NCBI GenBank assembly: GCA_977020255.1
Contig: CDROCS010002105.1
Span: 372,001 to 436,000, forward strand
DNA length: 64,000 nucleotides
Reading direction: 5' to 3'
From: Obrimoposthia wandeli
Taxonomy: Eukaryota
Under the pieces are notes generated by a model. It saw only the letters and a list, made by a program, of their open reading frames with translations. It did not search any database and was not told where the DNA came from. The translations under genes were made by a program, and so were the position numbers. Positions 5,411-42,690 of the stretch are shown piece after piece (within the stretch, counting starts at the first letter, position 1; each line of letters opens with the position of its first letter).

Positions 5411-5723
5411 TAACTCCCTCTTTCGTCAGCCTTTTCAACATTGATTAACCAAAAACATGAACTAAGTAAGGTTAATTAAATGTTAAATAACAATTTAATT
5501 TTGGCGGAGTTACAGTAAACAATCAACTAAATGGCAGTAATAGAAATACCGATAGTGTGTTGAATATTTTACATATATGTATTTATAATTATTTTTTATC
5601 TGTAACGATAAGTCAGTATTTTCATGCGGTTAGTTTATATTAACGTTTACCTTTAGATACGGGTTAAAAGAGATGACGGGTTATCTTTGATTAATGCAGG
5701 TTAAGTGTCAGTACAAAAGTGGA

Positions 5724-22716: not shown

Positions 22717-22934
22717 TCCGCTTGTCAGCTTCTTCACCTTCGTATTTATATCCGTATTTACTTCGGATGCGTTGGTCACCATCGGAAGAAAACGACCTTT
22801 GACCTTTCTTCGACGAACCATTACCTGTTAGTAGTACACCGCCGACTATTGGCGAGCATGGGTAAGGGCAGTGAAAAGCACATCTACGGTTTTTGGACAA
22901 AATGTATTCAAACAATCAGAGTGGCTTATTGCAA
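22717..22934 (-). pseudogene. menB: Decayed internal fragment of menB (direct repeat of 41868-42093)
   Basis: Aligns by eye to intact menB with substitutions and about 3 indels; translates to VLLTGNGSSKKGQRSFSSDGDQRIRSKYGYKYEG versus VLLTGNGPSKKGQWSFSSGGDQRIRGKDGYKYEG. Confidence 0.9.
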
Positions 22935-23053
22935 GTCGTTATTTGTTATATCTGCCTGAAAATAAGACATGTTTTTCCTTACAGTCTATACATACTCACT
23001 TAATTACATATCATGTATGTGGTTGGGTATGGTTATATACAAAAGGAATGTGT

Positions 23054-26000: not shown

Positions 26001-26749
26001 GCCTATTTATTGAACTGTCAAATACTGCCGAAATAATTCGCACTTTTTATCAATATTTGAGCCAATTTGAACAGAGTATTCAACATAAATCTCAGCAACT
26101 GAGTAAGCAGTTAGCGAATGTGCGCGCATTTGAAGCCATTGAAAAAATTCAGATTCGTCTTGCATCTAAAGTGAAAGAGGAGGCCTACTGGCCTTTACTA
26201 CGAAGTTTTCTTACTGATTATGATAATTGGCAAATTCAAAATCAGTCACTACCTCCGCAGGCTCTGGTCGATAACCTACTAGAGCTCGCGCAACTCTTTT
26301 CTCAACGTAGTAAAACCCATGTTGATCTCACCTTGCTGTTTAATTTAGAGGTGGATGTGGTGGAAAATGGCCATGCAAAAAAAGCAGTGACAGGCGCTGA
26401 GCTGGTTGATATTTCAAGTACCGGGCTCTCATACCTAATATTGATTCAAATATTCATTGCCTTAACCAATTTACTGCGTGGTAAATCTAACACAATGATT
26501 AACTGGCCAGTTGATGAACTCGGTAATTTCTCACGGTATAACAGTGCCAAATTACTGGTGACTTTAACTGAAAATGATATAGCCATTACCAGTGCCTTTC
26601 CCGATCCAGACCCTGAATTGCTAGGGGAATACAAGCACACCTATTACATAGAAAAACCAGGTCGTGACATTGTCACTTTTGTGGCTGGTCATCAAGGGTT
26701 ATCAGCAAGCATTGAAGCCATACTCAATGAGGAGGAAGCCCATGTTTGA
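23054..26749 (+). CDS. SMC/MukB-like ATPase (DUF3584-type; MksB/JetC-like)
   Basis: Walker A GDNGAGKTT, long coiled coil, signature-like ISSTGLSY, Walker B NWPVDELG, SAFPDPD; start moved to GTG 23054 (AAGGA RBS) because the ORF-track start at 22871 lies in the menB scar. Confidence 0.88.
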   Translation: MFYLNRIIAIDSFAAGKENVVYLNGHVNLNGDNGAGKTTFLQLIPPFFGAYPSQLVRRKKTKLPFVEYFLPNKTSYIIYEYIRGDQTCMAVMRSSTGNQSSQAQFLLIEHGYERSLFMLQTQQGFEALPSSDLARRVTDKGWVRTSQWLSLNEYRNVIQSNINERNLADKKQQHRRNENRRRFAFCRHGTSIHHIEKVVMGIFGREPSFETFKAIIVSIIQSDVFESESETTELHSTFINKASLEHWAKEYRQLKQVLNKQPQADSLGKMASECLLLRQERSRVASLVVQLMNEVESVLAEKVQYGDQLYKQSQDHNDHAVQCQREWTSKVIELEAEVTAIEKTITALESDHKSYQSINIEYLKQLVSRIPQRSTRIEELNQQISHLKSGAEAIELQYSELRHDIDRTFESRIRDREDTFNHDSKQLTQRKDILTQQYREQQSQIRVEANQKRETQEALKIPLVGKIAALKVMAETPPLTDEQKSELAAKQRAVKELIEQKQRYDQQHVSESEKIRHLDAQVSELESQLQGEKTRHQGVEARYQELLHYQTPNEHSLLYFLRTSQPDWITTIGKVIQPELLLRTDLQPQQLSSTDALYGVEINLDAISTLELVDEEKLQNLLSENRDQAKAFQQAISGYKAKQEKLARQCIKQRKLVQQVQYELKTCDSKLTQANQATQELEHKHQEYQSSLSERFYHQAAEKQQQLQSLEKDNQAIIVQCDQDYRASQQQEQDALSKLATQERNLFSRKTQEISDLRSKQEKRLAENDQERMRALKQGGVDTQTLQKQEQERERLKAENKQAFEAREVVEKYQRWSTDEWPRHPKYQQKRGRLDSQLTEYKRNVELQTVKLEDQTKQFKQQLTKVENQLRQIKEDQLACRSLQQQTSSYFQPHIIEEKSEADTLALIQHQWQTVQKRLDEVNKNAGKLFYTLKKVFLQEMDTNIYRLWQQLEQEHGSNDDWLVMAEPLNLSFQTELKQVQASLFIELSNTAEIIRTFYQYLSQFEQSIQHKSQQLSKQLANVRAFEAIEKIQIRLASKVKEEAYWPLLRSFLTDYDNWQIQNQSLPPQALVDNLLELAQLFSQRSKTHVDLTLLFNLEVDVVENGHAKKAVTGAELVDISSTGLSYLILIQIFIALTNLLRGKSNTMINWPVDELGNFSRYNSAKLLVTLTENDIAITSAFPDPDPELLGEYKHTYYIEKPGRDIVTFVAGHQGLSASIEAILNEEEAHV

Positions 26750-27356
26750 GCAACTAGCGTGGCAATTATTAGCGGGGGAGTTTATTTGCCAGTACCGGAC
26801 TCCGGAATGCTATCGCTATTTAGCGAGTGATGATAATCAGCAGCGGATGCGTGCGTGGCTGAAGCTGATTAATTTGGAATTGGTATCTACACCGCAGGGC
26901 AGTGCTTGGTATGCGGCTTGGATTGATTTGAATGATAAACCCAATGAAATTGATAAAGTATTTCGTGAGGTGGTACAAGATATCAAGCCACTTATTCATT
27001 TTTTGAGCTTGCTGATGAGTGCAAATCATCACGACGTGGCATTATCATCCGGTGATGTTATCCGTTTTCATGAATTATTGGCATCCATTAATGAACAGCC
27101 TGCGTTACGAGAAGAGTTGAAAGGGATCGCGATATTCTGGAAAAGTAATAAAGACAGCGTGGATGGTCAGCTTGGGGTGATTTTGTCGCGCATGGTAGAG
27201 ACGGGATTAATTTTTGAATCGAATCGCGATCAGAAAATCTATAAAGCGAGCGGAAAATTAGAATGGTTTTATGAGTTACTCGATTTCTATGCTGAACAGC
27301 ATCAAATTGTGGAATTAGAACCGGAATTTGAGCCAGAGAATGGGGATCTGTTCTGA
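26742..27356 (+). CDS. MksE/JetB-like kite subunit
   Basis: About 204 aa, LLAGEFIC, winged-helix-like C-terminal half (ILSRMVETGLI...IYKASGK); ATG 26742 follows GAGGAGG and overlaps the SMC stop. Confidence 0.7.
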   Translation: MFEQLAWQLLAGEFICQYRTPECYRYLASDDNQQRMRAWLKLINLELVSTPQGSAWYAAWIDLNDKPNEIDKVFREVVQDIKPLIHFLSLLMSANHHDVALSSGDVIRFHELLASINEQPALREELKGIAIFWKSNKDSVDGQLGVILSRMVETGLIFESNRDQKIYKASGKLEWFYELLDFYAEQHQIVELEPEFEPENGDLF

Positions 27357-28567
27357 TGTCACAGTCTGTAATTTCTGAGGTCATTAAAGCACTGCATGCT
27401 CAGCAGGGTAATATTGAGGATGCATATCATCAACGAGAAGTACAAGTTGAGCGTTCTCGCAGTTGGCAAACACTCGCAAATCAAGGGTTAGTGAGTGGCA
27501 CTTATGAACAGGGATTTCGACTATCCAGTGCCTTGCGTGACATGTTTGATGTGGCGGTACAAAAAGAGCAACGTCGAATTCGGGCCGTTGACATAGCGGC
27601 TTGGCAAGAGCAGATGTTGCATGCGGTAGAACAATACACTCATGCTAAGAACGAGCAACGTAACGACGATGCCGACCATCACCTCGAAGCCATTCGCAAC
27701 GATGTATACAGTTTAACGGATAGCGTAAAAGATAATACCGCGTTACTGGATCTCAAACTCGATAACCACTTTGGGTATGTCAGCACCCTTGAAGAGAAAA
27801 AACGGGAAAATCAGCAAGTGATCCAACAAGTCACACGGCTTTCTGATTCGTTGGCTTTGCTAGACCGAGATGAGTTAGATCGGCTGGCCAGCCAGCATAT
27901 TCCCCTGCGGCGAGTTTTTTACAACGATTTGCTCACCCAGGCACAAAGAACACGAGAAAAGCTCCAGCACTTGTTACCTAAGCTAAGACATAAACTATTT
28001 GGTTATCATCGTCCCGAACACCATGCACAACGGCTTAAACAGTGGCGTACTTATCTCTATCGCCATGCGGAGTTTGAATTTAGCTGCGAGACCGAGCCTG
28101 AAAAAGCGCTCTATAATCGGTTGCCTAGAAAAACAGGTGCGATCCAGCCTCGAATTCACTTGGGTATTGCCAAAGTCAATCAACAAGTTGCAGAGCGTTT
28201 GGCAAATAAAGTCTTCACTGAACGCTCCCAAACTACTGATCCGAAGGTGAAATCTGAAAAATGCCAGTTAACCCTTTCGCAGCAGTCGGAACGTGAGTTG
28301 AATCCCTCTCAGTTTCAAACTCTGGTTGTCAGCTTTATACGGTCTTTGCCACCTAATAAACCGGTTTCTGCATTACTATTTTTGCAACAGGCAGATCAGG
28401 CATTACCGAGCAATTTATGGCTGTTTGCATTACATGTCTGGGTAAGACAAGATCTGGATAAGTCACCATTAAAACAGCGTATCTCTGCTGAGCCGATTCT
28501 TAGTGCTCAGCCTTCTGGAGTTGGAAATATGATCATTCACGACTATAAATTTACACGCTATGCTTAA
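27356..28567 (+). CDS. MksF/JetA-like kleisin subunit
   Basis: 403 aa; N-terminal wHTH-like segment (LANQGLV...GFRLSSALRDMFD), helical middle (LLD.KLDN.FGYVSTLEEK.REN); coupled to both neighbours. Confidence 0.68.
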   Translation: MSQSVISEVIKALHAQQGNIEDAYHQREVQVERSRSWQTLANQGLVSGTYEQGFRLSSALRDMFDVAVQKEQRRIRAVDIAAWQEQMLHAVEQYTHAKNEQRNDDADHHLEAIRNDVYSLTDSVKDNTALLDLKLDNHFGYVSTLEEKKRENQQVIQQVTRLSDSLALLDRDELDRLASQHIPLRRVFYNDLLTQAQRTREKLQHLLPKLRHKLFGYHRPEHHAQRLKQWRTYLYRHAEFEFSCETEPEKALYNRLPRKTGAIQPRIHLGIAKVNQQVAERLANKVFTERSQTTDPKVKSEKCQLTLSQQSERELNPSQFQTLVVSFIRSLPPNKPVSALLFLQQADQALPSNLWLFALHVWVRQDLDKSPLKQRISAEPILSAQPSGVGNMIIHDYKFTRYA

Positions 28568-29441
28568 AATTAAACAGCTTCAGACACTGGCTAATATCAT
28601 CCTACAAAAGAAAGTCAAAGTTACTTTAAGTAAATGGCTTGCTGAATTAAGGGATACTTATGGCTTTGGTATACTTGATATCAAAGGCAAGCACCTGTTG
28701 CTGTCTGAGCAAGACTACCAAACATTGGAATGGATCATTCGGCAATATGTCGCTCCTTCCATTGAACTAGACCAACTGCTTAAACCTAATGCGAAAGAAC
28801 GTATCCAAACCTCAGCGATATTTAACGATGATAAAGCTGGGGCTGCAAAGGCGGGAGAAGAATGGCTACTTGTACGTTCAATTCTCGGGCCGTTGAAGCT
28901 TGAGCAAGCAATAGTAAATAATCCCGTTAGTGCTATCTGTGTAATGGATAAAGAGACACTCGTAAATCATCAACATCAAGCGTTGCTGGTGGTGGAAAAT
29001 AAAGCATTAATGAAAAGCATTCATCAGGCTAAATTACCAGAAGAGGTGATTCGTATGGATCCCTTGGTGATTTACCGCGGCGATGAGTATTTTTCAACTC
29101 GCACCAGTCTGGATTTTATTAAGAACCAATTAAAAGAACATCCTGAGAAACCGCTTTATTTGTTTACAGACTTCGATCCAAAAGGTTTAGTAATAGCGAT
29201 GGCCTATCCAAGTATTAAAGGATTTATTGTGCCAACTCAGGAGATAGTCTGGCAAAAACATACTAATTTTGACAACTTTATTAAACAAACTGAAAGCATG
29301 CGTACACTAGAGTTGAATGCAATGTTATGGAATACCAATATTCAACATATGATTAGCTTGATGGATAAAAAGCAAACGGCTATCACTCAAGAAATAATGG
29401 TTGCCAGATCGTTACCACTAACAACCATTAACATAAGTTAA
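28560..29441 (+). CDS. MksG/JetD-like Toprim nuclease (DUF2220-like)
   Basis: Toprim motifs LLVVENK, VIYRGD and YLFTDFDPKGLVIA; last gene of the SMC operon. Confidence 0.78.
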   Translation: MLKIKQLQTLANIILQKKVKVTLSKWLAELRDTYGFGILDIKGKHLLLSEQDYQTLEWIIRQYVAPSIELDQLLKPNAKERIQTSAIFNDDKAGAAKAGEEWLLVRSILGPLKLEQAIVNNPVSAICVMDKETLVNHQHQALLVVENKALMKSIHQAKLPEEVIRMDPLVIYRGDEYFSTRTSLDFIKNQLKEHPEKPLYLFTDFDPKGLVIAMAYPSIKGFIVPTQEIVWQKHTNFDNFIKQTESMRTLELNAMLWNTNIQHMISLMDKKQTAITQEIMVARSLPLTTINIS

Positions 29442-30292
29442 AACAGATAAGGCTGTAATTCCGCTAAATTTTCAATCACTAATTGCTGTGCTTCCGGTTT
29501 AGGCTCAAGTTTAGTTGGGTCGATATTGAATGCCTGTAAGGTATACCGTACTAAAGGACCTCGGGTAATTAGCTCCAGTCTGCCATCTTCCATACCGTAA
29601 TCTTTCTCAATGACTTTCTTTTGTGCATCGCTTAATCGTTGGTCGGGGATAAGGCTAATTGTGGTATTTGTATTCCATGGAAGATCCCCATCGGCTTTGT
29701 TTGGGGATTCGTCCATGATCTCTGGCTCACCGCTAAAGCGACTAAGAACAAAGTCACGATACTCTTTTCGCTTTTCACAGTAGGCGCGTACATGCCATCG
29801 TAAAGGTGTACAAACGAGTGTATGCGGCGCAATTACTCGGTATTCCGGCTCCGGATTTTCTAATGATATGTAGCATATCTCAACACGTTTCTTCTCGCGG
29901 GCTGCGCGAACCAGTACGCGCAAGATTTCTGGCTGGATATGACGCACTGGTGAATGCAGCATTTCTGTATTAGCAAAACCGAGATCTAGGCTATCAAATG
30001 TATGGCTAATATCCTTATTTCTGCTGATAACGTGCAGATACTCGTCTGCTGTGCCCGTTGTTAGTTTAGGTGAAAAAATCGGCGTAGGTTTATAGCCTTT
30101 TAAGTGTTTATCGTACTCAATGTTGCCTGGTGCGATATCTTTAGCGTAATTGTTGATGTCTTTAGACGCTTGCTGACGGCCAATGCCAAAGCTATTGCAT
30201 AAGTGGTTTGTGGTTAGTCTGCCTTCCCATTGAACAATAATCTCAATCAAACGGTAGCGGGTAAGTAAATCCCATCGTAGTGGCCAGCTCAT
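29438..30292 (-). CDS. WYL-domain transcriptional regulator (BrxR/CapW-like)
   Basis: N-terminal wHTH RYRLIEII..WEGRLTTNHL...FGIGRQQASKDI..Y; WYL core Y.SL..P....R.I.PH.LV....RWHVRAYCE...YRDFVLSR; start ATG 30292 with GAGG RBS. Confidence 0.9.
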   Translation of the reverse strand: MSWPLRWDLLTRYRLIEIIVQWEGRLTTNHLCNSFGIGRQQASKDINNYAKDIAPGNIEYDKHLKGYKPTPIFSPKLTTGTADEYLHVISRNKDISHTFDSLDLGFANTEMLHSPVRHIQPEILRVLVRAAREKKRVEICYISLENPEPEYRVIAPHTLVCTPLRWHVRAYCEKRKEYRDFVLSRFSGEPEIMDESPNKADGDLPWNTNTTISLIPDQRLSDAQKKVIEKDYGMEDGRLELITRGPLVRYTLQAFNIDPTKLEPKPEAQQLVIENLAELQPYLF

Positions 30293-30431
30293 AATCATCC
30301 TCTGAGTATAGAAATAGATGTGCGCGAAAAAGTTACATGTAAGTGTAAACAGTATAGACAGGTAGTCAACGGCTACATATATTGAATGGGTATTAAGGCA
30401 CGGAATATACATTTTAGGTGAGGATTTGGCC

Positions 30432-32027
30432 ATGACTGTAATAGCTCAAACGTTCAACGATGAAATTGAAGTACTCAAGCAAACCAATAATTTTGATTTT
30501 ATAGAGTGTAGTTTTTCTGCGTTGTATAAATTGAGTCAGCAGGCAGAGCAGTATTATCCAACCGATCAAGCGTGTTGCTTATTGAAAGTCAGACTATTTG
30601 TTGAATTATGGTGTAATGAAGTGGCCAGCCAACTGTTTATCACACACCCCAAAAATAGTGACTTATTTACCAAAATCAGTGGGGTCTCTGCACATCAGAA
30701 AATTCCTCATTACATTTCGGATGTTCTGAATCAGCTGCGTGTTGAAGGTAATCGTCAAGTACATATTGTGCAGGATATGTACGGCCAATGGAAAAGCGAT
30801 CATTGGCTGTCGAGCCTGAAAATGAAGCAAATTATGCAAGGTGTCCATGAACTGGCGTATTTTCTTGAATACAGTATGAAAGAAAAATCCTATGAACACT
30901 TTGTCGAATGGAAAGAACCCCAACGCAATCAAATGTCAGAATATGTTTATGAGGCGATGTCTGGAAACGCTGAGGCAACCTTTAAAATAGCTAAACATTA
31001 TTCAGTGTTACTCGAGCAACTTGAAAAGCAACCGCACACTCGAGAAGACCAATACCTGTTACAACGTGACTTAGGTTATTGGTTACGAAAAGCGGATGAT
31101 CAGCAGCACCCTGAAACATGGCTATTATATGCAACATCTTATGTGAACAAGCATTTAGTGGTGCCTAGTAACTGTTCTGTTAATGATTACTTTTTAAAAG
31201 CGATAGAGTGCGATAGTGATGGTGAAGCTGAATACCAGTTTGGCCTCTATTTAGACCGAAAAAATGAGCAAAAGCGAGCCATTGGTTATATCGAGGCTGC
31301 GGCAGCGAAAAGGCACCATCAGGCACTTCGAAAATTACAGGAACATTATTGGCACAAAGATAACGATAAATATGAGTTCTATGTCTCCTCTGGTGTCGAG
31401 GCGAAAGAATCAAGATCGTTTCTATTGATGGCTTTTGTCGAGATTGATAAATGGCTTAAGTATCCAGAGGATGAATTACAAGCGAGAAAATCACGTTCAG
31501 CTTTATTATGTTCATTGCATCGTAATGTCGTGGGAAGTGGATTTTTGCTGGGTTACTGTCATGTGTTTGGTTACTTAGGTTACAAGCAAGATCAGTCTAT
31601 GGGGTTAAAAATGATGGCCGAACATCATGGAAATGTCTCGATTTTTATTCAAAGTACTAAGTTGGCCTTTGATGCATTTAGTCTTGATGTTGACTATGCC
31701 ACGAAAGCGATCAAAGTCGCGCCTTTAGCGCTAAAGTATCTGCCAGAGGAACAAAAACCGACTCTGAAGTTTGACCTAGCAATGCTTGCTTTAGAGGAAA
31801 TGAGAGCCGGTAAAACCGTAAAAATACCGCTCGATGTAAAAAGCTTAATAAGAGAATCAGCCGAGGATGGATATGTTCCCGCTATGGAATTTACGTCTTC
31901 AAAAGAAGGAAAGGCATTGTTGGAAGATACCAGTATAAGAATGAAGCGCCGAACAAATAAAGTGGTTGATCGTTCTAAACAAAAGAAAGCGAAAAAACAG
32001 GCTCGAAAAGCAAAACGTAATAAATAA
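30432..32027 (+). CDS. DUF4145 (HEPN-like) N-terminal domain + Sel1-like repeats + basic tail
   Basis: N-terminus NFDFI...LY.L...AE..YP.D....LLK.RLF.E ... LNQLRVEGNRQVH resembles the DUF4145 domain of type I HsdR; Sel1-like AEYQFGLYL...AIGYIEAAA and LLGYCHVFGYLGYKQDQSMGL; tail KQKKAKKQARKAKRNK. Confidence 0.65.
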   Translation: MTVIAQTFNDEIEVLKQTNNFDFIECSFSALYKLSQQAEQYYPTDQACCLLKVRLFVELWCNEVASQLFITHPKNSDLFTKISGVSAHQKIPHYISDVLNQLRVEGNRQVHIVQDMYGQWKSDHWLSSLKMKQIMQGVHELAYFLEYSMKEKSYEHFVEWKEPQRNQMSEYVYEAMSGNAEATFKIAKHYSVLLEQLEKQPHTREDQYLLQRDLGYWLRKADDQQHPETWLLYATSYVNKHLVVPSNCSVNDYFLKAIECDSDGEAEYQFGLYLDRKNEQKRAIGYIEAAAAKRHHQALRKLQEHYWHKDNDKYEFYVSSGVEAKESRSFLLMAFVEIDKWLKYPEDELQARKSRSALLCSLHRNVVGSGFLLGYCHVFGYLGYKQDQSMGLKMMAEHHGNVSIFIQSTKLAFDAFSLDVDYATKAIKVAPLALKYLPEEQKPTLKFDLAMLALEEMRAGKTVKIPLDVKSLIRESAEDGYVPAMEFTSSKEGKALLEDTSIRMKRRTNKVVDRSKQKKAKKQARKAKRNK

Positions 32028-32186: not shown

Positions 32187-33203
32187 CCTGATTACCACTT
32201 AAATTCCGCCAATTGACTACACTTAAAATGAAATAAAAAGTGAGGCGGTGATCATGGCTAAAAATAAAGTCCAATTCCAAAAAAGTATTTCAATACATGC
32301 TTTTATTTCACAACTAGGTACTGAAGAGCAATGTCGAAAACGACTGTTTGATATGCGATGGCCTACTGGTTACCTATGTGAACATTGTGGCTGTGATAAG
32401 TATTGTGAATTGAAATCAAGAAAACTTTATCAATGTAACCAGTGCCATCATCAAGGATCAGTTACGTCTGGCACCTTATTTTCCGCTTCAAAATTGCCAT
32501 TAAACATATGGTTTTTAGCTATTTACCTCATAACTCAAGAGAAAAATGGTATTTCTGCATTAGAGCTGTCTCGCCAGCTTGGCATTTCCTATAACGCGGC
32601 ATGGCGTATGAAGCATAAATTGATGCAAACAATGAAAGAGCGAGATGATGAAACACCATTGAATGGTTACATTCAACTGGACGATGTTTATTGGGGAGGA
32701 GTCCACCGTGGCACCCGAGGGCGTGGAGCCAAAGGAAAACGTCCTTTCGTTGCCGCAGTATCAATGAACGAAGATGGTCACCCAATTAACATGCGATTTA
32801 GTGTTGTAACAGGTTTTAAAACCAAAGAATTAACGCGTTGGGCGAAAGCGAATCTTGTACCTAAATCTCTCGTTATTTCTGATGGTTTGGCTTGCTTTAA
32901 GGGGGTTAAAAAAGCGGATGTTTTTCACCTAGCTATCGTCACTGGCGGCGGTGCTGATTGCGTAGAATTGCCTTACTTTCAATGGGTCAACACAATGATT
33001 AGTAATGTGAAAAATTCAATGCACGGTACTTACCATGCAATAAACAAAAAACATTTACCTCGTTATCTCGGAGAATTCTGTTTTAAGTTCAATAGGCGCT
33101 TCAATCTTGAAAAAATGCTCGAACAGCTCATTTACTCAAGTATCCAGACAGCACCGATGCCTGAGCGGTTACTTAAACTGGCTGAGGCTCGGTGGTAATC
33201 AGG
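32187..33203 (+). mobile_element. Intact IS1595-family insertion sequence (1017 bp)
   Basis: Terminal inverted repeats CCTGATTACCAC / GTGGTAATCAGG; 8-bp target duplication TAAATGTA at 32179-32186 and 33204-33211. Confidence 0.95.
32254..33198 (+). CDS. IS1595-family DDE transposase
   Basis: Zinc ribbon CEHC...YQCNQCHHQ.SVTSGTLF, GISALELSRQLGISYNAAW, IQLDDVYWGG, VISDG, KHLPRYLGEF.FKFNRR. Confidence 0.95.
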   Translation: MAKNKVQFQKSISIHAFISQLGTEEQCRKRLFDMRWPTGYLCEHCGCDKYCELKSRKLYQCNQCHHQGSVTSGTLFSASKLPLNIWFLAIYLITQEKNGISALELSRQLGISYNAAWRMKHKLMQTMKERDDETPLNGYIQLDDVYWGGVHRGTRGRGAKGKRPFVAAVSMNEDGHPINMRFSVVTGFKTKELTRWAKANLVPKSLVISDGLACFKGVKKADVFHLAIVTGGGADCVELPYFQWVNTMISNVKNSMHGTYHAINKKHLPRYLGEFCFKFNRRFNLEKMLEQLIYSSIQTAPMPERLLKLAEARW

Positions 33204-33684
33204 TAAATGTAAGTGCAAATGTAAACATGAACATGTTACAAAAATTAAAAGAAATGTTTGGCAGCGTATTTTTTATAAATCAATATTCAAGTGTAAGGGT
33301 TGTGGTGAATTAATTAAATTATAAATGTCATCATAATAAAGTTTAAAATGAAGTTATATTCTAGGTTGGCTTGCTGATAAACATGCTAGTAACTTATTTC
33401 CTTTACATGTTTAGGTTTCAATCTGACAAGTGAAACAGACTGAAAACAGGCAGTTAGAAGTTTGCTTAGTGTACTGAAAGTTGGGTTTTATTAATTGATA
33501 TCATAAAGTTGTGATGTAAATGACTTGTTTTCATAAAATTAATTGATTTTATTATTGAGTGTTATTGGAATTGATTGTCACAATGTATATTATTCATCAG
33601 TGTATAATAGTGACTAATTTATCTGAGTCTTAGCTTGATATAAGTTCTTATATTTTTTGCTGAAATTAAATATTGGGTGTAAAG

Positions 33685-35334
33685 ATGGAATTAAAAAAAT
33701 ACATTAGTAATGAAGGGAACCTTCTTAAAAAATTAAGTCAAAAATATGACGTCACCACAGATGTTTTAGATCACATTTTAGTCGATAACTTCAAGTTTCA
33801 GGTTCGCTTACCGTTGATTGGTGCATTTAGTTCTGGAAAATCAAGTTTGGTAAATTCGTTGCTGAAAGACCGTATTTTCCCTGTGGAGGTAAACCCTGAA
33901 ACATGTTTGCCTGCAGAAGTGCATTACGGCCTAGAGGAAAATTTAAGTCTTTGTGAGTTATCAGGAGAGAGTAGACCGATAACTCGGCCTCAAATTAAAG
34001 CGCAGGATTATGGGTTAGCGGAAGATGGCAATGTAACAAGGTGGTTGGACGTCGCACTACCAAACCCTATTTTAGCGCAATGTCCGGAATTAGTATTAGT
34101 GGATATGCCTGGCTGGGAGTCAGGAATTGCTCAGCATAGTCATGCTATTGATAATTATGTTCACCGTAGTGGTGCTTATTGTCTGGTTGTTAGTGTAGAT
34201 GATGGTAACTTGCGCGAAAGCCTAAAGCGGGTTTTAGCCGAGCTAAAACTTTTTAATAAGCCAATCATGGTGGTATTGACCAAATGCGATAAGCGCCCTG
34301 AAGAAGATACAGAAGCGGTTGCTAGGCAAATTGTTGCTGAGGTCGAGAGTGTGATTGGGTCGGCACCGTTAGCTGTAGTTAAAGTATCACGCAAGAAAAA
34401 TATAGAAGCTTTTATTTCTGCCGTTCATCAGGTCAACCAATTGTCGAGTGATATTCACCATCAGGCAATCATCAAACCGCTGAAAGCATATATTTCACAG
34501 TTAGAATCCACGTTGAGAGTATTACTCAATGATGACAATATTGAAGTGGAACAAATTGCCGTCGAGCAACAGCAACGCCAGCATGAATTAGAAGTGCTAA
34601 AAGTACAGCTTAATGAAGCAGGGGAACTACTCGACAGTATTGTGCCAACCACTGTTGATCGTGTGCTTGAGTTATTCAGTAATCGCCTAACCGCTCAAGT
34701 CGATAGCTTGGCTCGTGCTGCGATTCACCAAGGTGATATCGAGGGTATTATTGGTTCAACTCAGCGTCTAGCATTTACTGAAGGGCTGGAATTAGAGTTC
34801 AAGCCTCGTATTCGCCAGCAGATCCAATCGATAAGCCCAATCAATGCCGAGGATCCTCAAGGGTTTTCTGTCGAAATGAATTTTAAATCAAGTGGCGAGA
34901 ACAGTATAACCAAAGACATTCTCAGTGATGTTCTTCCGATGCTTATTGGTGTTTTAACCCGTACTCCCATTTTAATCCCCCTTGCTCCTTTGATTACTCG
35001 CCTGATTAAAGGGGTATTTGCAAACAAAGAGAAAGAATTTCAAGCTCGTCAGCACTTGGAAGATGCGAAGCAGTATGTGTTGAGCTCGTTAATCCCAGAT
35101 ATTTGTGCACGATCTCGAAATACGGTTGAAGAAGCACTCTTAAAATCAGTGGCAGAAATTAAGCAACAATTGATGAGCGATACGGAATTACGTGGTGAAC
35201 AGCACCTCGAAGCATTGCGTAAGCTGGCCGTGAACCTTGAACAAAGTCAGCAGCAGCAACGTCAGCTGAAAGATGAGTATCTGGCAGATTTAGATACGTT
35301 ATTAACATTCACAGCTGGGCTGGAGGTTAAATAA
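33685..35334 (+). CDS. Dynamin-like GTPase 1
   Basis: G1 GAFSSGKSS, G2 region PET, G3 DMPG, G4 TKCD, helical C-terminus with hydrophobic paddle (VLPMLIGVLTRTPILIPLAPLI). Confidence 0.85.
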   Translation: MELKKYISNEGNLLKKLSQKYDVTTDVLDHILVDNFKFQVRLPLIGAFSSGKSSLVNSLLKDRIFPVEVNPETCLPAEVHYGLEENLSLCELSGESRPITRPQIKAQDYGLAEDGNVTRWLDVALPNPILAQCPELVLVDMPGWESGIAQHSHAIDNYVHRSGAYCLVVSVDDGNLRESLKRVLAELKLFNKPIMVVLTKCDKRPEEDTEAVARQIVAEVESVIGSAPLAVVKVSRKKNIEAFISAVHQVNQLSSDIHHQAIIKPLKAYISQLESTLRVLLNDDNIEVEQIAVEQQQRQHELEVLKVQLNEAGELLDSIVPTTVDRVLELFSNRLTAQVDSLARAAIHQGDIEGIIGSTQRLAFTEGLELEFKPRIRQQIQSISPINAEDPQGFSVEMNFKSSGENSITKDILSDVLPMLIGVLTRTPILIPLAPLITRLIKGVFANKEKEFQARQHLEDAKQYVLSSLIPDICARSRNTVEEALLKSVAEIKQQLMSDTELRGEQHLEALRKLAVNLEQSQQQQRQLKDEYLADLDTLLTFTAGLEVK

Positions 35335-36887
35335 TGCACCATCAAGATGAGCCTACGGCACTAACTCCTGAGCTATTAGCCCAACGCTATTCGTTACTCT
35401 GTCGGGCGTGTGATGCTGAAGTAAGCCCAAATAGAAATTTGGATATTGCTTTAACGCAGTTGGAAAAGATTATTAGGGAGGATCTGCCAGAATTGGCTCG
35501 GCAAGGTAGTCCAGCGAATGTGGCTGATATTCTGCGGGCATTTGAAGCCGAGCTGGCACGCTTCCGTGATTTCTGCGAATTTCCACTGCTGGCAAGTAAA
35601 TCGGTCGTTGCTGTTGGCGGAGCGTTCAGTGCGGGTAAATCAAGCTTTATTAATCGGTTGATTAAGACTAAATGCCTAGCAACAGAAGTGGATCCAACCA
35701 CATCGTTACCGACTTATGTATTGCGTGGCAAACCGGGGATCATGGCATTAAATACCTACAATCGTGCAGTTTCAATTACTCCAGAAGAGTTTGCAACTCT
35801 GACGCACGATGAAAAGCAGTTGTATGGCAGTCAAGTGAGTTGTCTTTTACAGTCGGCATTTGTCACTTTACCTGAATTTTCTTGGCAAAACCTGACATTG
35901 CTGGACACCCCTGGCTATACAAAGTCCGAAGATGAAGGCCGTGGTACTCGTACCGATGCGAACTTGGCTAAAGCTCAGCTCAATAGTGCTAATTATATTA
36001 TTTGGGCGATGTCAGCGGAGTCGGGCACGATATCGGAAGAAGACTTAACCTTTCTGGCGTCATTGAAACGTGATATTCCCAAGTTGGTTATAGTGACTCG
36101 TGCGGATAAGCGTGATCAGGAAGATATCGACAATGTCGTAGCTTTAGTTTGCTATACCTTGGCAAACCGTGGGATTGAGGTACTGGATGTGGTGCCTTAC
36201 TCCAACCGAAAGAAGCGCTTGTATCCTATAGAATCTGTGACTGACTATATGGATAGCTGGAATTTATCGCAGCATCCTTTGCAGTTTGCTCAAGAGTTTA
36301 AACGGCAATTCTTGCACTATCAGCGCTATATTGATGAGCAAAACCGGATTGCGAACCTGCGCTTGCATCGGTTAAACCGCATTTTAGCCTTGAGTGAAGA
36401 CTCCGATTTGACCAAAGAAGCCGATGCGCTTAAAAACTTGGCACAAAAAGAGTTACACCAGCTTGAACGGCTAGGGGAAAAGCTTACTGGCAACAGTGTA
36501 CAGTTCTTTTCTCAGCTTAAGTATATCGGTGATATGGCAGGTGTTGCCTTGCCGGAACCGAGTGCCGTTGAATTGATGGATTTCGAGGAGAGTAATCTGC
36601 TTGATATGCTGCGAAGCCTTCGTGAGCAGCTGGAATTGGATGAACCCGCTGAGCCTCAATTGGAAACGTTATTATCAGCTCCGATAACAGAATCCGCCTT
36701 AGCTAAAATATTACGACGTGATTTTCAAACAGTTCCGATCTTGGAGACGCTGTTAGATGAGCCTTGTTTAGTAAGCCTCCCAGCGATATTACGTGAAAAA
36801 CGTCCGGTTCAAGATGTATTGGATTTGTTGGCTCTTGGCAATCCAACCAATGTGGATGTTGATGAAGTTGAAGGAGTACGGTTATGA
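35334..36887 (+). CDS. Dynamin-like GTPase 2
   Basis: G1 GAFSAGKSS, PTT, G3 DTPG, G4 TRAD, VVPYS; C-terminal tail with a 28-aa internal repeat. Confidence 0.85.
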   Translation: MHHQDEPTALTPELLAQRYSLLCRACDAEVSPNRNLDIALTQLEKIIREDLPELARQGSPANVADILRAFEAELARFRDFCEFPLLASKSVVAVGGAFSAGKSSFINRLIKTKCLATEVDPTTSLPTYVLRGKPGIMALNTYNRAVSITPEEFATLTHDEKQLYGSQVSCLLQSAFVTLPEFSWQNLTLLDTPGYTKSEDEGRGTRTDANLAKAQLNSANYIIWAMSAESGTISEEDLTFLASLKRDIPKLVIVTRADKRDQEDIDNVVALVCYTLANRGIEVLDVVPYSNRKKRLYPIESVTDYMDSWNLSQHPLQFAQEFKRQFLHYQRYIDEQNRIANLRLHRLNRILALSEDSDLTKEADALKNLAQKELHQLERLGEKLTGNSVQFFSQLKYIGDMAGVALPEPSAVELMDFEESNLLDMLRSLREQLELDEPAEPQLETLLSAPITESALAKILRRDFQTVPILETLLDEPCLVSLPAILREKRPVQDVLDLLALGNPTNVDVDEVEGVRL

Positions 36888-37675
36888 AAATAAACACATT
36901 GCATCAGTTAATTGATGAAGCCAAATTAGAATTGTATCCGCTAGATGCACACATATTATCCGGTCAATCTGAGTGGGATCGTGAACAATACGCAATTTTG
37001 CTTGCTGCAGTTTTGATCGGTGATGGCACTGTATCTGAAGCACAATGCCGGGTGTTTGGATTATTACTGGCCGCATTACATTTACCTACTGAGCCAGCAA
37101 GATATTTTGCTCAGGTGGGCCAAGTTGATAAGTCGACAGTTATTGAATTTGTTAATAGATATAAAAGTCAGGATGTCGCCAAGGCATTTGTATTTGATGC
37201 GGCGGTTTTAGAAAAATTATCAGAAAACAGTTCGTCTGAATCAAAACAGTTCCTTTTCGAAATTATCCAGTTGTTAGATGTTAATTTTAATGAACTGGTC
37301 GTTTTTTACAAACTACTTATCACGGAGGAAATGGAAATAAATCATAGTGATAAGTTTGTAATTAAATCAGATGTTTATGAAGTAATAGAGAGGGTTAATA
37401 AAAGGGGGGGTATTTTTACAAATGCATTTTTTTTTGCATTAAATGATATGGCCAATCAAACTTGCAAAATAAATAAAGATATGAGGCTGCTATATGAGAT
37501 CGAAGATAATACCCTTGTTTACCACTCAACTGTTGAAAACATTGGAACTGTTCAATGGGGTGAAAGTACGTACCAATCGCAGCGAGTGAAGGTCTGTTAT
37601 GGCATTTCATATTTACCTTCGCTTCATCACTGGAAGCCAGTATTTCAAGATATCATAGAAGGAAGTTGCGCATGA
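36884..37675 (+). CDS. Hypothetical protein with TerB-like N-terminal domain
   Basis: YAILLAAVLIGDGTVSEAQ..VFGLLL resembles the TerB (A)DG.vs..E motif; ATGA overlap with the upstream gene; AT-rich C-terminal half. Confidence 0.55.
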   Translation: MKINTLHQLIDEAKLELYPLDAHILSGQSEWDREQYAILLAAVLIGDGTVSEAQCRVFGLLLAALHLPTEPARYFAQVGQVDKSTVIEFVNRYKSQDVAKAFVFDAAVLEKLSENSSSESKQFLFEIIQLLDVNFNELVVFYKLLITEEMEINHSDKFVIKSDVYEVIERVNKRGGIFTNAFFFALNDMANQTCKINKDMRLLYEIEDNTLVYHSTVENIGTVQWGESTYQSQRVKVCYGISYLPSLHHWKPVFQDIIEGSCA

Positions 37676-39057
37676 TATCGTTACTAGGAGATTTTGATAG
37701 TCTGCGCCAAGAGCGAGAACCACTACAACCACATGCAGCCATCATGCTTGATGAACCAAAAAAGAAACAATATGCAGCCTTAGTCACTATGTTTATGCTT
37801 GCTGGTGGTCAAGTTAATGCAAAGCAGGAACGTCTGTTAGGGTTATGGCTTAAGGCGCTCTCTCTTAATACCTCGTTAGCTGATGTACTGGAAAGCGCAC
37901 AGCAAATGAATATTGATGCTTTACGCAATGCGATAGCCGTAATCGAGCAGCATGATTTGGTGGAACATTGCTTAGTTGATATTCTAGTCTTTATCCGTAT
38001 TGGCGGGGCGAGCTCAGACACCATCACAGCTTTACTCGCAGAGTGGGTGACTTTGCTTAAGATATCTAAAGAGAAAGTGTCTGATGCTGTAATTTTTGTA
38101 TCTCGTATACTCGGTGCTACCGACATCTTCGCTTTCAGCTTGGAATTCTGTCCAACTCAGTATGGCGTATGGTTAGAGTTCTTTGCCACACCGATAACTC
38201 AGGCTGATTTGGAAAATGGTATTGAGGGCGGTGCTTGGTTAGTGACTAGTGATATCACGGTCGAGAAAGAAGTGACTATCAATAATGCTGAACTCTGGTT
38301 TGTTGGCAATACCACTCTGGCCTTTAATGGGGCTGGTAATACTGTAATCAAAAAAACTTTATTGCGTAGGCCTCTGGTGACGGTCAGTCATCCGAATTTA
38401 GTTTTAATATTAGAAGACTCTTCGGTAGAAGGTGTTTACCAGCATAACATGCTTGTCACGGCAATGTTGGTAGAAGCGGCTGATCGTTTTGTGTCGCGAC
38501 GTTGTCATTACCAGACGGTAGATGCTCGTACATATTACTTTGGTGCAGAAGTGTCATTTGAATTTGAAGGTGGATCATTTTCATGCTGTGGTAATAAGGC
38601 GAAGAATGGCGGAGCGATCGCATCTCGTACGGGGACGAATATCACTAATAAATTGTCCGGCGTAAAGTTTAAAAACTGTGTGGCTAATATTGGTGCTGTT
38701 ATCTATATGCACTACGCGGCGGAAAAAACCTTCTATCAATGTGAAATAATCAATTGTCATTCTGATGTTGATTTTGGTAAATATAATGCTGGTTCAATTT
38801 ACCTTCTTGATGCAAATAGTGGTTTTATGATCGCTTCGACTGTTATTAATAGCAATATTTCATTACGTGATACATGGCATCATTCAGATTCTGTGTTTAT
38901 TGTTGATTCTTTTTTAAAAAGTTGCATGATAAATTTTTCAAGAGAAGATGGTAATAGAAATGAATTTTTATGTGATAAAACAAGAGACATTAGCGGTGCT
39001 ACCAATCAGCAAGTAAAAAAACATTCTTCATCCCTGCCAAATAGCTTGAGTTTTTAA
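37672..39057 (+). CDS. TerB-like N-terminal domain + right-handed beta-helix (pectin-lyase-like) C-terminal domain
   Basis: N-terminus paralogous to 36884-37675; C-terminal repeats such as NGGAIA, FKNCVANIGAVIY, IINCHS; ATGA overlap at 37672. Confidence 0.55.
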   Translation: MISLLGDFDSLRQEREPLQPHAAIMLDEPKKKQYAALVTMFMLAGGQVNAKQERLLGLWLKALSLNTSLADVLESAQQMNIDALRNAIAVIEQHDLVEHCLVDILVFIRIGGASSDTITALLAEWVTLLKISKEKVSDAVIFVSRILGATDIFAFSLEFCPTQYGVWLEFFATPITQADLENGIEGGAWLVTSDITVEKEVTINNAELWFVGNTTLAFNGAGNTVIKKTLLRRPLVTVSHPNLVLILEDSSVEGVYQHNMLVTAMLVEAADRFVSRRCHYQTVDARTYYFGAEVSFEFEGGSFSCCGNKAKNGGAIASRTGTNITNKLSGVKFKNCVANIGAVIYMHYAAEKTFYQCEIINCHSDVDFGKYNAGSIYLLDANSGFMIASTVINSNISLRDTWHHSDSVFIVDSFLKSCMINFSREDGNRNEFLCDKTRDISGATNQQVKKHSSSLPNSLSF

Positions 39058-39060
39058 ACT

Positions 39061-41193
39061 ATGACGATTTTATTTCTAGAAGATATTAGCCAGTTTAAGC
39101 CGTGGCAAAGTGAGTTGCCTGAAGTGAATGGGCTATTCGAAATTCAAAATGACTTTAAACAAAAGTTAGCACGCTGGAAAGAGCAAGAACAGTGCCTCAG
39201 CATCGGGGTGATGGGGCAAGTGAAGGCGGGGAAAAGTAGCTTTCTTAATGCCTTGTTGTTTGATGGTAAGCCCATTTTACCAGCAGCGGCAACGCCCAAA
39301 ACTGCGAATCTGACCCGAATTAGTTACGGTGAACAATTTGCGTTGCGGGTGGAATATTATAGTCAGAATGAATGGCAGCTGATTGTAAAAGAGGCACAGG
39401 GTAAGGGTGAGCATACCGAAGCGAAAGTGGCTCGAGAATTAGTAAAAATGGCCAGAAAGGTTGGCGATAAACTGGAACAATGCCTAAAGATAGGCGTTGA
39501 AAGATTCCAGGTTGACAATCTGGAATCTTTGCAAGGCGTGTTGAACCAGTACACAGGTAATGATGGCGAGTTCACTCCTTTAGTAAAATGTACCGAAATC
39601 ACACTACCGCTTGAAGAATTGCGTGGCTTGGAAGTGGTAGATACTCCAGGTATGAACGATCCAGTGCAAAGCCGTACCCAAAAAACCCGCGATTATATGG
39701 CAAATTGTGATGTGGTATTTTTCCTGTCTCACAGCAGTAAGTTTTTGGACCAGCCTGATGTTGATCTACTGGCCACACAGCTTCCCGGCAAAGGGGTAAA
39801 GCATATGGTGCTGGTTGCCGTACAGTTTGATTCTGCGATTCTGGATGATGGTTTTAATCGTGACTCACTGGCAGAAACAGAAGCTAACCTAAAGAAGCGT
39901 TTGGGGGGGAATGCTCAGAAACAATTGATGGAATTGGTAAAGCGAAAGCAGGATAGTGGTAATAAGGCTGCAGCAGATTTGTTGAACAACCTGACAGTAC
40001 CGATTTTTGCCAGTACTTTTGCCCACGGATTTGCCCATTGGCCGCAAAGTCGATGGTCAAAAAATATGAAACATGTACACGCTGAATTACTCGAACTGGC
40101 AGAAGATGAATGGGATGATACGATTACGCATGAAGACTGGCTTCGAATTGCCAACTTCAGTGAGTTAACACAAGCCTATAAATATGCTCGAGAAAATAGA
40201 ATAACGCTGCTGAAAGCCCAACATGACAGTGTGATTCCTGATGCGGTATTGCAATATGAACAACAGTTAACCTTGATAGCGAAGAGTGCACAAGCCCGCG
40301 TTAAACATTTGCAAACTGAGGATGTTGCTTCTCTTGAGCTGAAAAAAGCCAATTGCGAAAAGCATATTGCTGAATTATCTGTTCGGCTGTCTCGAGTTCT
40401 GAATGCTGCGCAGCGTCAGGCACAGCAGATGTCAGATGATCTGATGCAGCAGATTCGTCAGGATAAAGAGAGCTATAGCCACCTTAATGAAAAAACAGGC
40501 ACGACAACCCGTACCCGTTCACATGAAGTGAGTGATTCAACGTGGTATAAACCCTGGTCGTGGGGGAGTACACGTACTGTCTACTCTACTTATAGTGAGA
40601 ACTATCAGTATTTGAGCAGTGCAGATGCCGCAGAGCAGATACGCCTGTTTGGTAAAAATAGTGCACGACAAGTAACGGCGCGATTTGCAGAGTTGATCGC
40701 CCCGAAGCAGCTAAAACTGGAACTGAAAAAAGCACTGTTAGATGGGCTTGATACACGTAGCGAGCAGTTTGATCCTATGCAGTTTAGGACAACCCTTGAA
40801 CAGTCATTGGTAAGTTTGCAAATGCCACGTTTGGAAGTTGATCTGGGAGATACCACCTCTCTGATTGGCGGTAGTTTTAGTGGAGATGTACAAGGTGCTG
40901 ATGAGATGAAACGTCTGCGTAGTTCGTTAAATCAGGCTCTACGAGCAATAATGGAGCGTTTTGAAAGCTGTTTTCAAGAACAGTTCCAGGTTGTTATGCA
41001 GCAGCTAGAGTTAGTTGAGCAGACTTTAACAGAACGTCTTATCAAGGATGTAAAAGCTGAATTGAACACGCTTCAGCAGAAGGTGGAAAATAAAGAAGCT
41101 GAGTTAAAATACTATAATTCGTTATTAGTATTAACTTCTGAATCGTTATCATCGACTACAGAGATAAAGGGGAAAATAGCAGAAACAGCATAA
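39061..41193 (+). CDS. Dynamin-like GTPase 3
   Basis: G1 GQVKAGKSSFLN, LP.AATPKTANLT, G3 DTPGMND, long helical C-terminus with DSTWYKPWSWG. Confidence 0.85.
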   Translation: MTILFLEDISQFKPWQSELPEVNGLFEIQNDFKQKLARWKEQEQCLSIGVMGQVKAGKSSFLNALLFDGKPILPAAATPKTANLTRISYGEQFALRVEYYSQNEWQLIVKEAQGKGEHTEAKVARELVKMARKVGDKLEQCLKIGVERFQVDNLESLQGVLNQYTGNDGEFTPLVKCTEITLPLEELRGLEVVDTPGMNDPVQSRTQKTRDYMANCDVVFFLSHSSKFLDQPDVDLLATQLPGKGVKHMVLVAVQFDSAILDDGFNRDSLAETEANLKKRLGGNAQKQLMELVKRKQDSGNKAAADLLNNLTVPIFASTFAHGFAHWPQSRWSKNMKHVHAELLELAEDEWDDTITHEDWLRIANFSELTQAYKYARENRITLLKAQHDSVIPDAVLQYEQQLTLIAKSAQARVKHLQTEDVASLELKKANCEKHIAELSVRLSRVLNAAQRQAQQMSDDLMQQIRQDKESYSHLNEKTGTTTRTRSHEVSDSTWYKPWSWGSTRTVYSTYSENYQYLSSADAAEQIRLFGKNSARQVTARFAELIAPKQLKLELKKALLDGLDTRSEQFDPMQFRTTLEQSLVSLQMPRLEVDLGDTTSLIGGSFSGDVQGADEMKRLRSSLNQALRAIMERFESCFQEQFQVVMQQLELVEQTLTERLIKDVKAELNTLQQKVENKEAELKYYNSLLVLTSESLSSTTEIKGKIAETA

Positions 41194-41254
41194 CAACTGT
41201 TTCTTATTGAGTGGTAAGTATTGGGCGATAGTTATCTTCAGTGCTTATCATTTT

Positions 41255-41302: not shown

Positions 41303-42199
41303 TTAGTAATGCCAAGGAAAGCGGCTGAAGTCTTGATCTCGTTTTTCCAAAAAGGCATCGCGGCCTTCTTGTGCTTCTTCGGTGCCATAGGCTAGGCGAG
41401 TTGCTTCACCTGCAAATAGTTGCTGTCCAACTAAGCCATCGTCAGCCATGTTGAAACCGTATTTAAGCATACGCATCGCAGTGGGTGATTTGCTATTGAT
41501 CTCTTTAGCCCAAACAAGCGCTTCATTTTCAAGTTCAAAGTGGTCAATAACCTTATTGACCATACCCATGTCATAGGCTTCTTGCGCACTGTAGTTGAAA
41601 CCGCAGAAGAATATTTCACGGGCACGTTTTTGGCCAATCATCTTGGCAAGGTAAGCCGAGCCGTAGCCTGAATCAAATGATGCTACATCAGGATCTGTCT
41701 GCTTGAATACAGCGTGTTCTTTTGATGCAAGAGTCAAGTCACACACTACGTGCAAGCTATGACCGCCACCTACCGCCCAGCCTGGTACTACAGCAATGAC
41801 GACTTTCGGCATAAAGCGAATCATACGCTGAACTTCAAGGATATGTAGGCGACCCATGCGAGCAACATCCGCTTTGCCAGCTTCTGCACCTTCGTATTTA
41901 TATCCGTCTTTGCCTCGGATACGTTGGTCACCACCGGAAGAAAACGACCATTGGCCTTTCTTCGACGGACCATTACCGGTTAGCAGTACACAGCCAACAT
42001 CAGACGATTGGCGAGCATGATCAAGGGCATTGAAAAGCTCATCTACAGTTTTTGGACGAAATGCATTCAAACAATCAGGGCGGCTTATTGCAATACGAAC
42101 CGTACCGTGCGCTTTAGCGCGATGGTAGGTGATGTCTTCAAAATCAAAGCCAGGGACTTCATCCCACAATTCAGGATTAAAAATTTCTTTGCTGGTCAT
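41303..42199 (-). CDS. menB: 1,4-dihydroxy-2-naphthoyl-CoA synthase
   Basis: DITYHR, NAFRPKTVDEL, FSSGGDQ, RLHILEVQR.IRFMPK, AVGGGHSLHVVCDLT, SFDSGYGS, EGRDAFLEKR; start ATG 42199 (ORF track 42286). Confidence 0.95.
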   Translation of the reverse strand: MTSKEIFNPELWDEVPGFDFEDITYHRAKAHGTVRIAISRPDCLNAFRPKTVDELFNALDHARQSSDVGCVLLTGNGPSKKGQWSFSSGGDQRIRGKDGYKYEGAEAGKADVARMGRLHILEVQRMIRFMPKVVIAVVPGWAVGGGHSLHVVCDLTLASKEHAVFKQTDPDVASFDSGYGSAYLAKMIGQKRAREIFFCGFNYSAQEAYDMGMVNKVIDHFELENEALVWAKEINSKSPTAMRMLKYGFNMADDGLVGQQLFAGEATRLAYGTEEAQEGRDAFLEKRDQDFSRFPWHY

Positions 42200-42690
42200 G
42201 ATGACGGTTGCCTCATTGGTTAGATGAGCTAAGGCTATGGCGTTAGCGCTAAATGTCAATGATTTATGAAGAATTGTGACAATCATCGTAGGGATTATTT
42301 GGTGCTGGCTTATTAATCAAGCAGATCTCGCGAGTTCATTCGACCAAAAAGAAAGACTTTAATGTAGGTCCGTTCTCGATCATACACTGATGAATTTCCG
42401 ATTTAGCAGGCAACGGTGTGTATATATAAAGTACCAAGTCATTAATGGTGTACTTGATTATGACTTGGGGTAATTGACGAGGGTGTTTGTACCCACGTTT
42501 TTCTGTTTTATATACAGTCATATTATATTTTTTGAATTTTCGATATTCGATATCAACATTCCGCACGTTTTCACTTGGATGTTGACTGTTAAGTCTTTAG
42601 TATCAGTTGGTTGTATGAGATTGGTGAAATGTGATGGATATTATTAAATATGCGTACTATAGAAATGTTATGTGTGAAAAAAGGTGAATC

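Follow-up and report, generated by a model that had tools for sequence, protein, structure and literature searches.

The 64,000-nucleotide stretch of the Obrimoposthia wandeli assembly GCA_977020255.1 analysed here (contig CDROCS010002105.1, positions 372,001 to 436,000 of the forward strand; hereafter ‘the window’, whose numbering is used throughout) carries an operon of five co-directional genes, g1 to g5, spanning 33685–41193 in the list of open reading frames (ORFs; table 1). Three of them (g1, g2 and g5) encode dynamin-type GTPases, and the two middle genes (g3 and g4) encode a short and a long accessory protein whose common N-terminal domain is predicted to be TerB-like in fold. This locus belongs to a widespread, mobile and previously unnamed gene module, the invariant core of which, elsewhere, is the three-dynamin triad, the TerB-like genes being one of several alternative accessory modules. 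In the window's own branch, the triad is joined by one to three TerB-like accessory proteins. The existence of a conserved module is close to certain. As for its function, the chances of a defence role appear to lie a little over one half, and we lean slightly towards a modular system acting against phages or mobile elements, with TerB-like sensor-adaptors that would direct a three-dynamin membrane machine.

The five genes form a real, translationally coupled unit. Read directly, the g1/g2 junction is TAATG, i.e. a 1-nt overlap, those of g2/g3 and g3/g4 are ATGA overlaps, and a 3-nt gap separates g4 from g5. The ORF list and this reading of the junctions therefore show that an earlier note on the same DNA, which had described five genes joined in exactly this manner, was exact on this point. 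Purine-rich stretches (GGAGG/AGGAG/AGGAAG) lie 7–10 nt 5′ of the g2, g3 and g4 starts, and the earliest possible start of g1 in the ORF list is a TTG at 33673. The AT-rich region preceding g1 is presumed to be the promoter region of the operon, and the inverted repeat across the g5 stop codon is a possible terminator common to g5 and to the convergent downstream gene; a scan for promoters and terminators gave no excess of sites over shuffled sequence. Neither signal peptides nor transmembrane helices were detected in any of the five operon proteins.

All three GTPases score well above the gathering cut-off of the Pfam Dynamin_N model (27 bits), with 65.7 bits (6.7e-18) for g1, 63.1 bits (4.3e-17) for g2 and 73.4 bits (2.9e-20) for g5, and the G1 (GxxxxGKS) and G3 (DxPG) motifs are found in each alike, which bears out the claim of three distinct dynamin-type GTPases. 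The G4 motif reads TKCD in g1, TRAD in g2 and a deviant VQFD in g5. In g1, G1 lies at residue 46, G3 at residue 140 and G4 at residue 199, and a hydrophobic segment (residues 419–447; Kyte–Doolittle 19-residue maximum of 1.78 at 419) is a plausible candidate for a membrane paddle; g5 has a Trp-rich loop. For all three, the nearest solved structure by sequence is the Campylobacter DLP1/DLP2 pair (5OWV): g1 and g2 match PDB chain 5owv_C (614 residues; 4.9e-7 and 1.9e-9, respectively) and g5 matches 5owv_A (732 residues; 1.3e-18), as well as BDLP (2j68; 1.7e-10). The likeness is mostly confined to the GTPase domain, and the Campylobacter jejuni proteins differ from the window operon in being a two-gene pair without accessory proteins. 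C. jejuni DLP1/DLP2 form a heterotetramer that tethers membranes; we know of no defence role for them. Orthologues of g2 occur at 39–52% identity in Methylococcaceae, Neisseriales and Desulfobotulus.

The constancy of the triad emerged from a metagenome scan with the g2-orthologue alignment, which gave 78 loci, annotated with our own ORF and hidden Markov model (HMM) pipeline; an alignment-based scan of genome contigs yielded 3 loci only. All three dynamin types were present in each of the 20 metagenomic loci having at least 5 kb on both sides, and the TerB-like domain was detected in 8 of these complete triad loci. Moreover, a tree of 174 dynamins separates into three clades (g1, 99% support; g2, 100%; g5, 100%) with parallel internal branching, indicating that the triplication is old and that the three genes travel together, some of the clustering being by construction, as the tree labels were taken from best hits. 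Gene order is also preserved at a distance. The order g1-g2-short-long-g5 occurs with unrelated flanks in two loci (L006 and L007), the five-gene order is retained in a Methylococcaceae metagenome-assembled genome (L009), and Desulfobotulus alkaliphilus (L011) carries a rearranged four-gene version, g2-adaptor-g5-g1. The middle genes co-occur with the dynamins in distant genomes, with the order kept in several, and in others they are fused to the g2-type dynamin.

Indeed, the TerB-like domain either directly adjoins the g2-type gene or is fused near residue 466 of the g2-type protein. Such fusions are found in P0114, L029, L032 and L035, and more weakly in L017; one relative of 792 amino acids (aa) unites a g2-type dynamin and the shared domain in a single protein. 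In triad loci devoid of the TerB-like domain, the g2-type C-termini carry other modules, namely FGE-sulfatase, HEAT/LRV, Sel1-TPR-Lcl_C or a second IIGP/AIG1-like GTPase. The accessory proteins themselves are variable too: among 132 g3/g4 homologues, some have Beta_helix, WD40, Lcl_C, LRR or lipoyl domains at the C-terminus. In a distant branch, g1-type proteins of approximately 1,230 aa combine an N-terminal patatin-like phospholipase with the dynamin GTPase and a glycine zipper, the patatin domain being a possible effector.

The patatin-fused g1-type protein lies at 6127–9840 of L053 and was also observed in L054–L057, L060, L063 and L068. The same branch also has a fourth, g2-like dynamin of 529 aa.

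The two middle genes of the window, as the earlier note had proposed, share an N-terminal domain. They are paralogous across their first approximately 125 aa (BLASTP 26% identity, E 5e-9), and the shared domain extends over approximately 145 aa. Neither g3 nor g4 has a Pfam match at E ≤ 0.1, a PADLOC match or a significant NCBIfam match, and word-indexed searches reached just 2 (g4) and 3 (g3) near relatives. It was a HMMER search of 1.84 billion representatives with a profile of that domain (E ≤ 1e-3) that opened the family, with 333 clusters distributed in a short class (about 250–350 aa) and a long class (about 450–525 aa), as are g3 and g4. Among 64 members, His21, Tyr34 and Asp103 (g4 numbering) are invariant, and Asp9, Pro17 and Arg54 nearly so.

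The AlphaFold2 models of g3 and g4 were built on shallow alignments and are poor overall, the shared domain being the better part. With the g4 model, the two leading VIA-align matches were 2ou3, a structure of the TerB family (Z 11.0), and 2h5n, which is TerB-like (Z 7.8), clearly ahead of the next (5.1), and with the g3 model the same two structures (Z 8.0 and 7.9, respectively) came top among 48,161 chains in a Foldseek-free PDB search, helical folds being prone to reach middling Z scores. AlphaFold DB clusters named TerB/DjlA N-terminal domain also match at probability 1.0, with template modelling (TM) scores by hit of 0.21–0.61. These fold matches, taken together with misses by the Pfam TerB model and by sequence profiles (see below), therefore lead to the label ‘TerB-like in fold’: the models support an N-terminal domain that would be TerB-like in fold without being a member of the Pfam TerB family. 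Accordingly, the earlier description of the middle genes as TerB-like stands as regards the fold and fails as regards the Pfam TerB model, which does not match g3 or g4.

The C-terminal parts of the two proteins are of different kinds. That of g4 is very likely a right-handed beta-helix, given its ESM Atlas features (0.92, with 196 features shared with Beta_helix clusters), the presence of Pfam Beta_helix in 15 of the 67 long-class homologues and the conserved Cys-rich GGAI-type repeats seen on alignment. For g3, secondary structure prediction gives two helices followed by two long strands, and a PDB sequence search with this C-terminus returned no match. A RelE/ParE-like assignment of residues 145–263 (37316–37672) was rejected as anything beyond a lead: the ESM feature score to RelE/ParE-like clusters (0.74) and the NCBIfam RelE_StbE match (E 0.08, residues 193–213) are both weak, and the evidence lies under any reliable level.

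These C-termini vary even between close strains. Compared with the relative L001, the dynamins of the window are 96–99% identical, with a synonymous divergence (dS) of 0.02–0.10. The N-terminal domain of g3 is 92% identical, whereas its C-terminal half falls to 40%, with a dS of 1.7; in g4, the beta-helix part evolves faster than the N-terminal half. Since dS is high along with the non-synonymous divergence in the g3 C-terminus, the pattern is that of cassette replacement by recombination rather than of point-wise positive selection, and points to a g3 C-terminus that has probably been swapped between near-identical strains.

The module is also found on mobile elements. Plasmid pPGC22 of Photobacterium ganghwense (L090, 22391–29164 of the record) carries g1-g2-adaptor-g5, with an adaptor of 252 aa, between a TraU-family gene and traN in an F-type transfer region. 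An Escherichia coli IncF plasmid (NZ_CP148279.1; L091, 44300–51888 of the record) carries a distant triad in the order g1-g5-g2, followed by an 829-aa CFI-box-CTERM domain-containing protein that matches nothing in Pfam or PADLOC; about ten Escherichia plasmids carry this set. On a Pseudomonas aeruginosa megaplasmid, a WYL gene lies directly upstream of the triad and Zorya-like genes beside it. Searches of phage genomes and viral contigs turned up no g2-type relative.

Around the module, the enrichment in defence genes is suggestive, not decisive. The survey covered 63 flanking proteins in 18 further loci from the closer branch, and roughly 15 of these proteins match PADLOC models at E ≤ 1e-10, against a baseline of 2 among the 27 non-island proteins of the window. 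The matching neighbours include a true LeoA (1.5e-171), five WYL regulators, QatABC, PifA, Cas1/Cas3c and a reverse transcriptase of the DRT type; Pfam matches among the neighbours add bpMoxR/vWA, KAP and patatin.

TerB or TerB-like proteins, for which membrane surveillance has been proposed, are known from several defence systems (SngA of Shango, BnzA of Bunzi and DinB of Dionysus), where they stand alongside executing proteins, an arrangement resembling that of the window operon. The partners differ: Dionysus, which disrupts jumbo-phage early infection vesicles, pairs its TerB-like protein with a pore-former, whereas those of the window are dynamins, and the shared domain has conserved residues of its own. 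In Shango, the TerB protein is accompanied by an ATPase and a helicase. None of the five operon proteins matches an ATPase, helicase or pore-former family. On the dynamin side, Bacillus subtilis DynA is described as a dynamin-like protein with two GTPase heads, membrane binding and an ability to delay phage-induced lysis. It is, however, one fused protein with a housekeeping role and no sensor partners, and the NCBIfam DynA model gives 24–28 bits here against a cut-off of 1600.

In the system that we slightly favour, the TerB-like domain would dock the accessory proteins on the g2-type dynamin, and the variable C-terminal modules would sense either a protein or glycan derived from the invader or a cue at the membrane. 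Such sensing might then license GTP-dependent assembly of a g1/g2/g5 hetero-oligomer at the inner membrane by way of the g1 paddle, and the assembled complex could remodel, tether or seal the membrane, by analogy with what has been described for DynA and proposed for Eleos, the two-dynamin defence system discussed below. In the patatin-fused relatives, the outcome may be membrane destruction, as an abortive-infection response. Given that Eleos acts on jumbo phages and Dionysus on early infection vesicles, membrane-bound phage compartments would make an attractive, if speculative, target. The earlier suggestion that the TerB-like pair are sensors or adaptors gains from the variable and swappable C-termini, but these genes proved to be only one accessory option among others.

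Several observations weigh against this reading. The metagenomic loci are not independent, several being near-duplicates, and TerB-like genes are missing from 12 of the 20 complete triad loci, so that the core machine can do without them. The contrast between about 15 of 63 and 2 of 27 proteins is modest, and the first figure is approximate, the underlying table counting families rather than proteins. The TerB-like assignment rests on models of medium confidence (predicted local distance difference test, pLDDT, of 60–85 in the shared domain). Pfam TerB (PF05099) matches only 4 of 132 family members (8.8e-6 to 2.2e-4), and the shared-domain profiles gave chance-level matches only against PDB sequences and reached no solved TerB structure. 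For the C-terminal domains of g3 and g4, the models are too poor to use (pLDDT < 40), so that the folds of these domains rest on indirect evidence. Lastly, docking on g2 is proposed from adjacency and fusions, and the window version encodes no obvious toxic effector.

This last point speaks for the leading alternative, which we consider unlikely, namely that the operon is an accessory module for membrane maintenance or envelope stress (lesion repair, vesicle formation) and has no specific part in immunity. In that case, the TerB-like proteins would sense membrane or metal stress and recruit the dynamins. TerB was indeed originally tied to stress responses, bacterial dynamins, DynA among them, are also reported to react to pore-forming antibiotics, and a paddle-like segment in g1, in a set of proteins free of signal peptides and transmembrane helices, would suit such a function. 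However, the distribution of the module is sporadic and mobile (plasmids, islands), its binding domains vary and have been exchanged, patatin fusions occur in some relatives, and its neighbourhoods are rich in defence genes, so that a conflict system fits better than stress repair.

The identity of any such conflict system then has to be considered. The three-dynamin, TerB-like module has no model in PADLOC 2.0 or NCBIfam and no description was found in the literature searched, in agreement with the claim that a DLP-DLP-TerB-TerB-DLP unit was undescribed; the survey of NTP-dependent conflict systems by Kaur et al. 2020 (PMC7159879) mentions neither dynamins nor TerB. To judge from sequence comparison, the operon appears to be a more elaborate, undescribed relative of Eleos, and its triad would be a remote relative of the Eleos pair. 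Eleos (formerly ‘Dynamins’; LeoA and LeoBC, LeoABC in enterotoxigenic E. coli H10407), in which defence needs the P-loops of both dynamins, is likewise an operon of paired bacterial dynamin-like GTPases located in defence islands, and a co-localisation of about 60% with known defence systems has been described for it. One could go further and regard the window locus as a divergent Eleos, hence already known, with g2 to g4 as passengers or lineage-specific extras, since both systems have paired DLP1/DLP2-like dynamins and, across relatives, the g1 type weakly matches PADLOC LeoA (27–60 bits) and the g5 type LeoBC (28–50 bits).

We consider this improbable. Eleos comprises two genes (three if one is split) without a non-dynamin partner, whereas the window has three full-length dynamins, one of them of a separate g2-type clade that is represented in all of the complete loci, and TerB-like accessory proteins whose genes are translationally coupled to the dynamins and, in some relatives, fused to g2. 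HMM scores here are 10- to 30-fold under those of true members. PADLOC LeoA gives 38 bits for g1, with a best stretch at residues 28–61 only, and 24 bits for g2; with the NCBIfam LeoA/HP0731 model the score is 13.8 bits, where the cut-off stands at 325, and the genuine LeoA noted above in a neighbouring gene is of an altogether different order. The window g5 has no PADLOC match, LeoBC included, at E ≤ 0.1. Thereby, the window operon shows neither a LeoA-family protein, nor a LeoBC partner, nor a gene set made of dynamins only, by which Eleos is recognised.

A signalling arrangement of the RdcA/RdcB (YjdA/YjcZ) kind, in which dynamins and partners would control a further enzyme, for instance a diguanylate cyclase, is very improbable: the combination of a dynamin-like GTPase with a small partner protein is similar, g2 weakly matches CrfC/YjdA and dynamin + RdcB-like + phospholipase operons occur on E. 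coli islands, but that match (32.6 bits) is far under the NCBIfam cut-off of 1146, RdcA/RdcB has one dynamin, its partner family is not detectably related to g3/g4 (the Pfam matches listed for g3, g4 and the 132 homologues include no YjcZ) and no candidate target enzyme is conserved beside the module. Kinship with YjcZ/RdcB or CrfC was thus rejected as unsupported. The phospholipase of the island RdcB-type operons parallels the patatin fusions of the distant triad relatives.

The module bears on how bacterial dynamins recognise infection and act upon it; neither Eleos nor DynA is known to have a sensor. It has separable parts, with three dynamin types that would have distinct roles, one type being the place where accessory domains attach, and with accessory C-termini that vary by strain and are swappable, so that specificity, assembly order and membrane action become testable. 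The family is broad, considering the number of accessory-domain clusters and the fact that IncF plasmids of E. coli and megaplasmids of P. aeruginosa both carry triads, and as current defence-annotation models miss it, defence inventories probably lack it. A more far-reaching proposal, to which we attach somewhat less than an even chance, is that of a new modular immune family, in which three co-evolved dynamins would be aimed by exchangeable sensors (beta-helix, lectin-like, LRR, WD40, FGE-sulfatase) via a TerB-like docking domain. If true, it would be a bacterial counterpart of pathogen-directed dynamin-family GTPases such as Mx and the GBPs, and the first dynamin-based defence whose sensing component is identifiable in sequence.

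Table 1. Positions of the operon genes, their flanking signals and the neighbouring island features in the window.
Feature	Position	Strand	Length	Description
g1	33685–35334	+	549 aa counted from ATG	dynamin-like GTPase, DLP2/LeoA-like type
g2	35334–36887	+	517 aa	dynamin-like GTPase, best conserved subunit
g3	36884–37675	+	263 aa	short adaptor: putative TerB-like N-terminal domain (~1–146) and strain-variable C-terminal domain
g4	37672–39057	+	461 aa counted from ATG	long adaptor: putative TerB-like domain (~1–150) and beta-helix-like C-terminal domain
g5	39061–41193	+	710 aa	dynamin-like GTPase, DLP1/LeoBC-like type
Presumed promoter region	33204–33684	+		native, AT-rich; 95.6% identity to the L001 region upstream of g1
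Inverted repeat across g5 stop codon	41181–41204	not assigned		9-pair stem (terminator scan, − strand)
Wadjet-like cluster	22871–29441			SMC-like DUF3584 (1292 aa), MksE-like, 403-aa protein, DUF7281/Toprim
BrxR-type WYL regulator and DUF4145 protein	29438–32027	− (regulator)	533 aa (DUF4145 protein)	regulator divergent from the DUF4145 protein
IS1595-family element	about 32187–33203			transposase ORF 32248–33198; between the DUF4145 gene and g1

The location of the operon in an island with other defence-like genes, also put forward in the earlier note, was confirmed: the Wadjet-like cluster, the WYL/BrxR regulator, the DUF4145 gene and the IS1595 transposase gene lie directly upstream. The 403-aa protein of the Wadjet-like cluster has no Pfam match; the cluster is preserved in the close relatives L001 and L005. 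Three 331-aa minus-strand ORFs of the window, considered as repeated copies, were rejected as such, being mutually unrelated.

The IS1595-family insertion appears to have produced an 8-bp target duplication and has spared the 480 bp immediately upstream of g1, the empty site being found in L001 at about 5560–5567. In close relatives, the whole island is retained, the insertion sequence is absent and the right flank is different. Similarity to L001 stops approximately 60 bp after g5, near 41253. To the right of this position, the window has a convergent gene of the enoyl-CoA hydratase family (41303–42286), whereas L001 has DUF2913, MFS and SDR genes; the right flank of the island therefore differs between strains.

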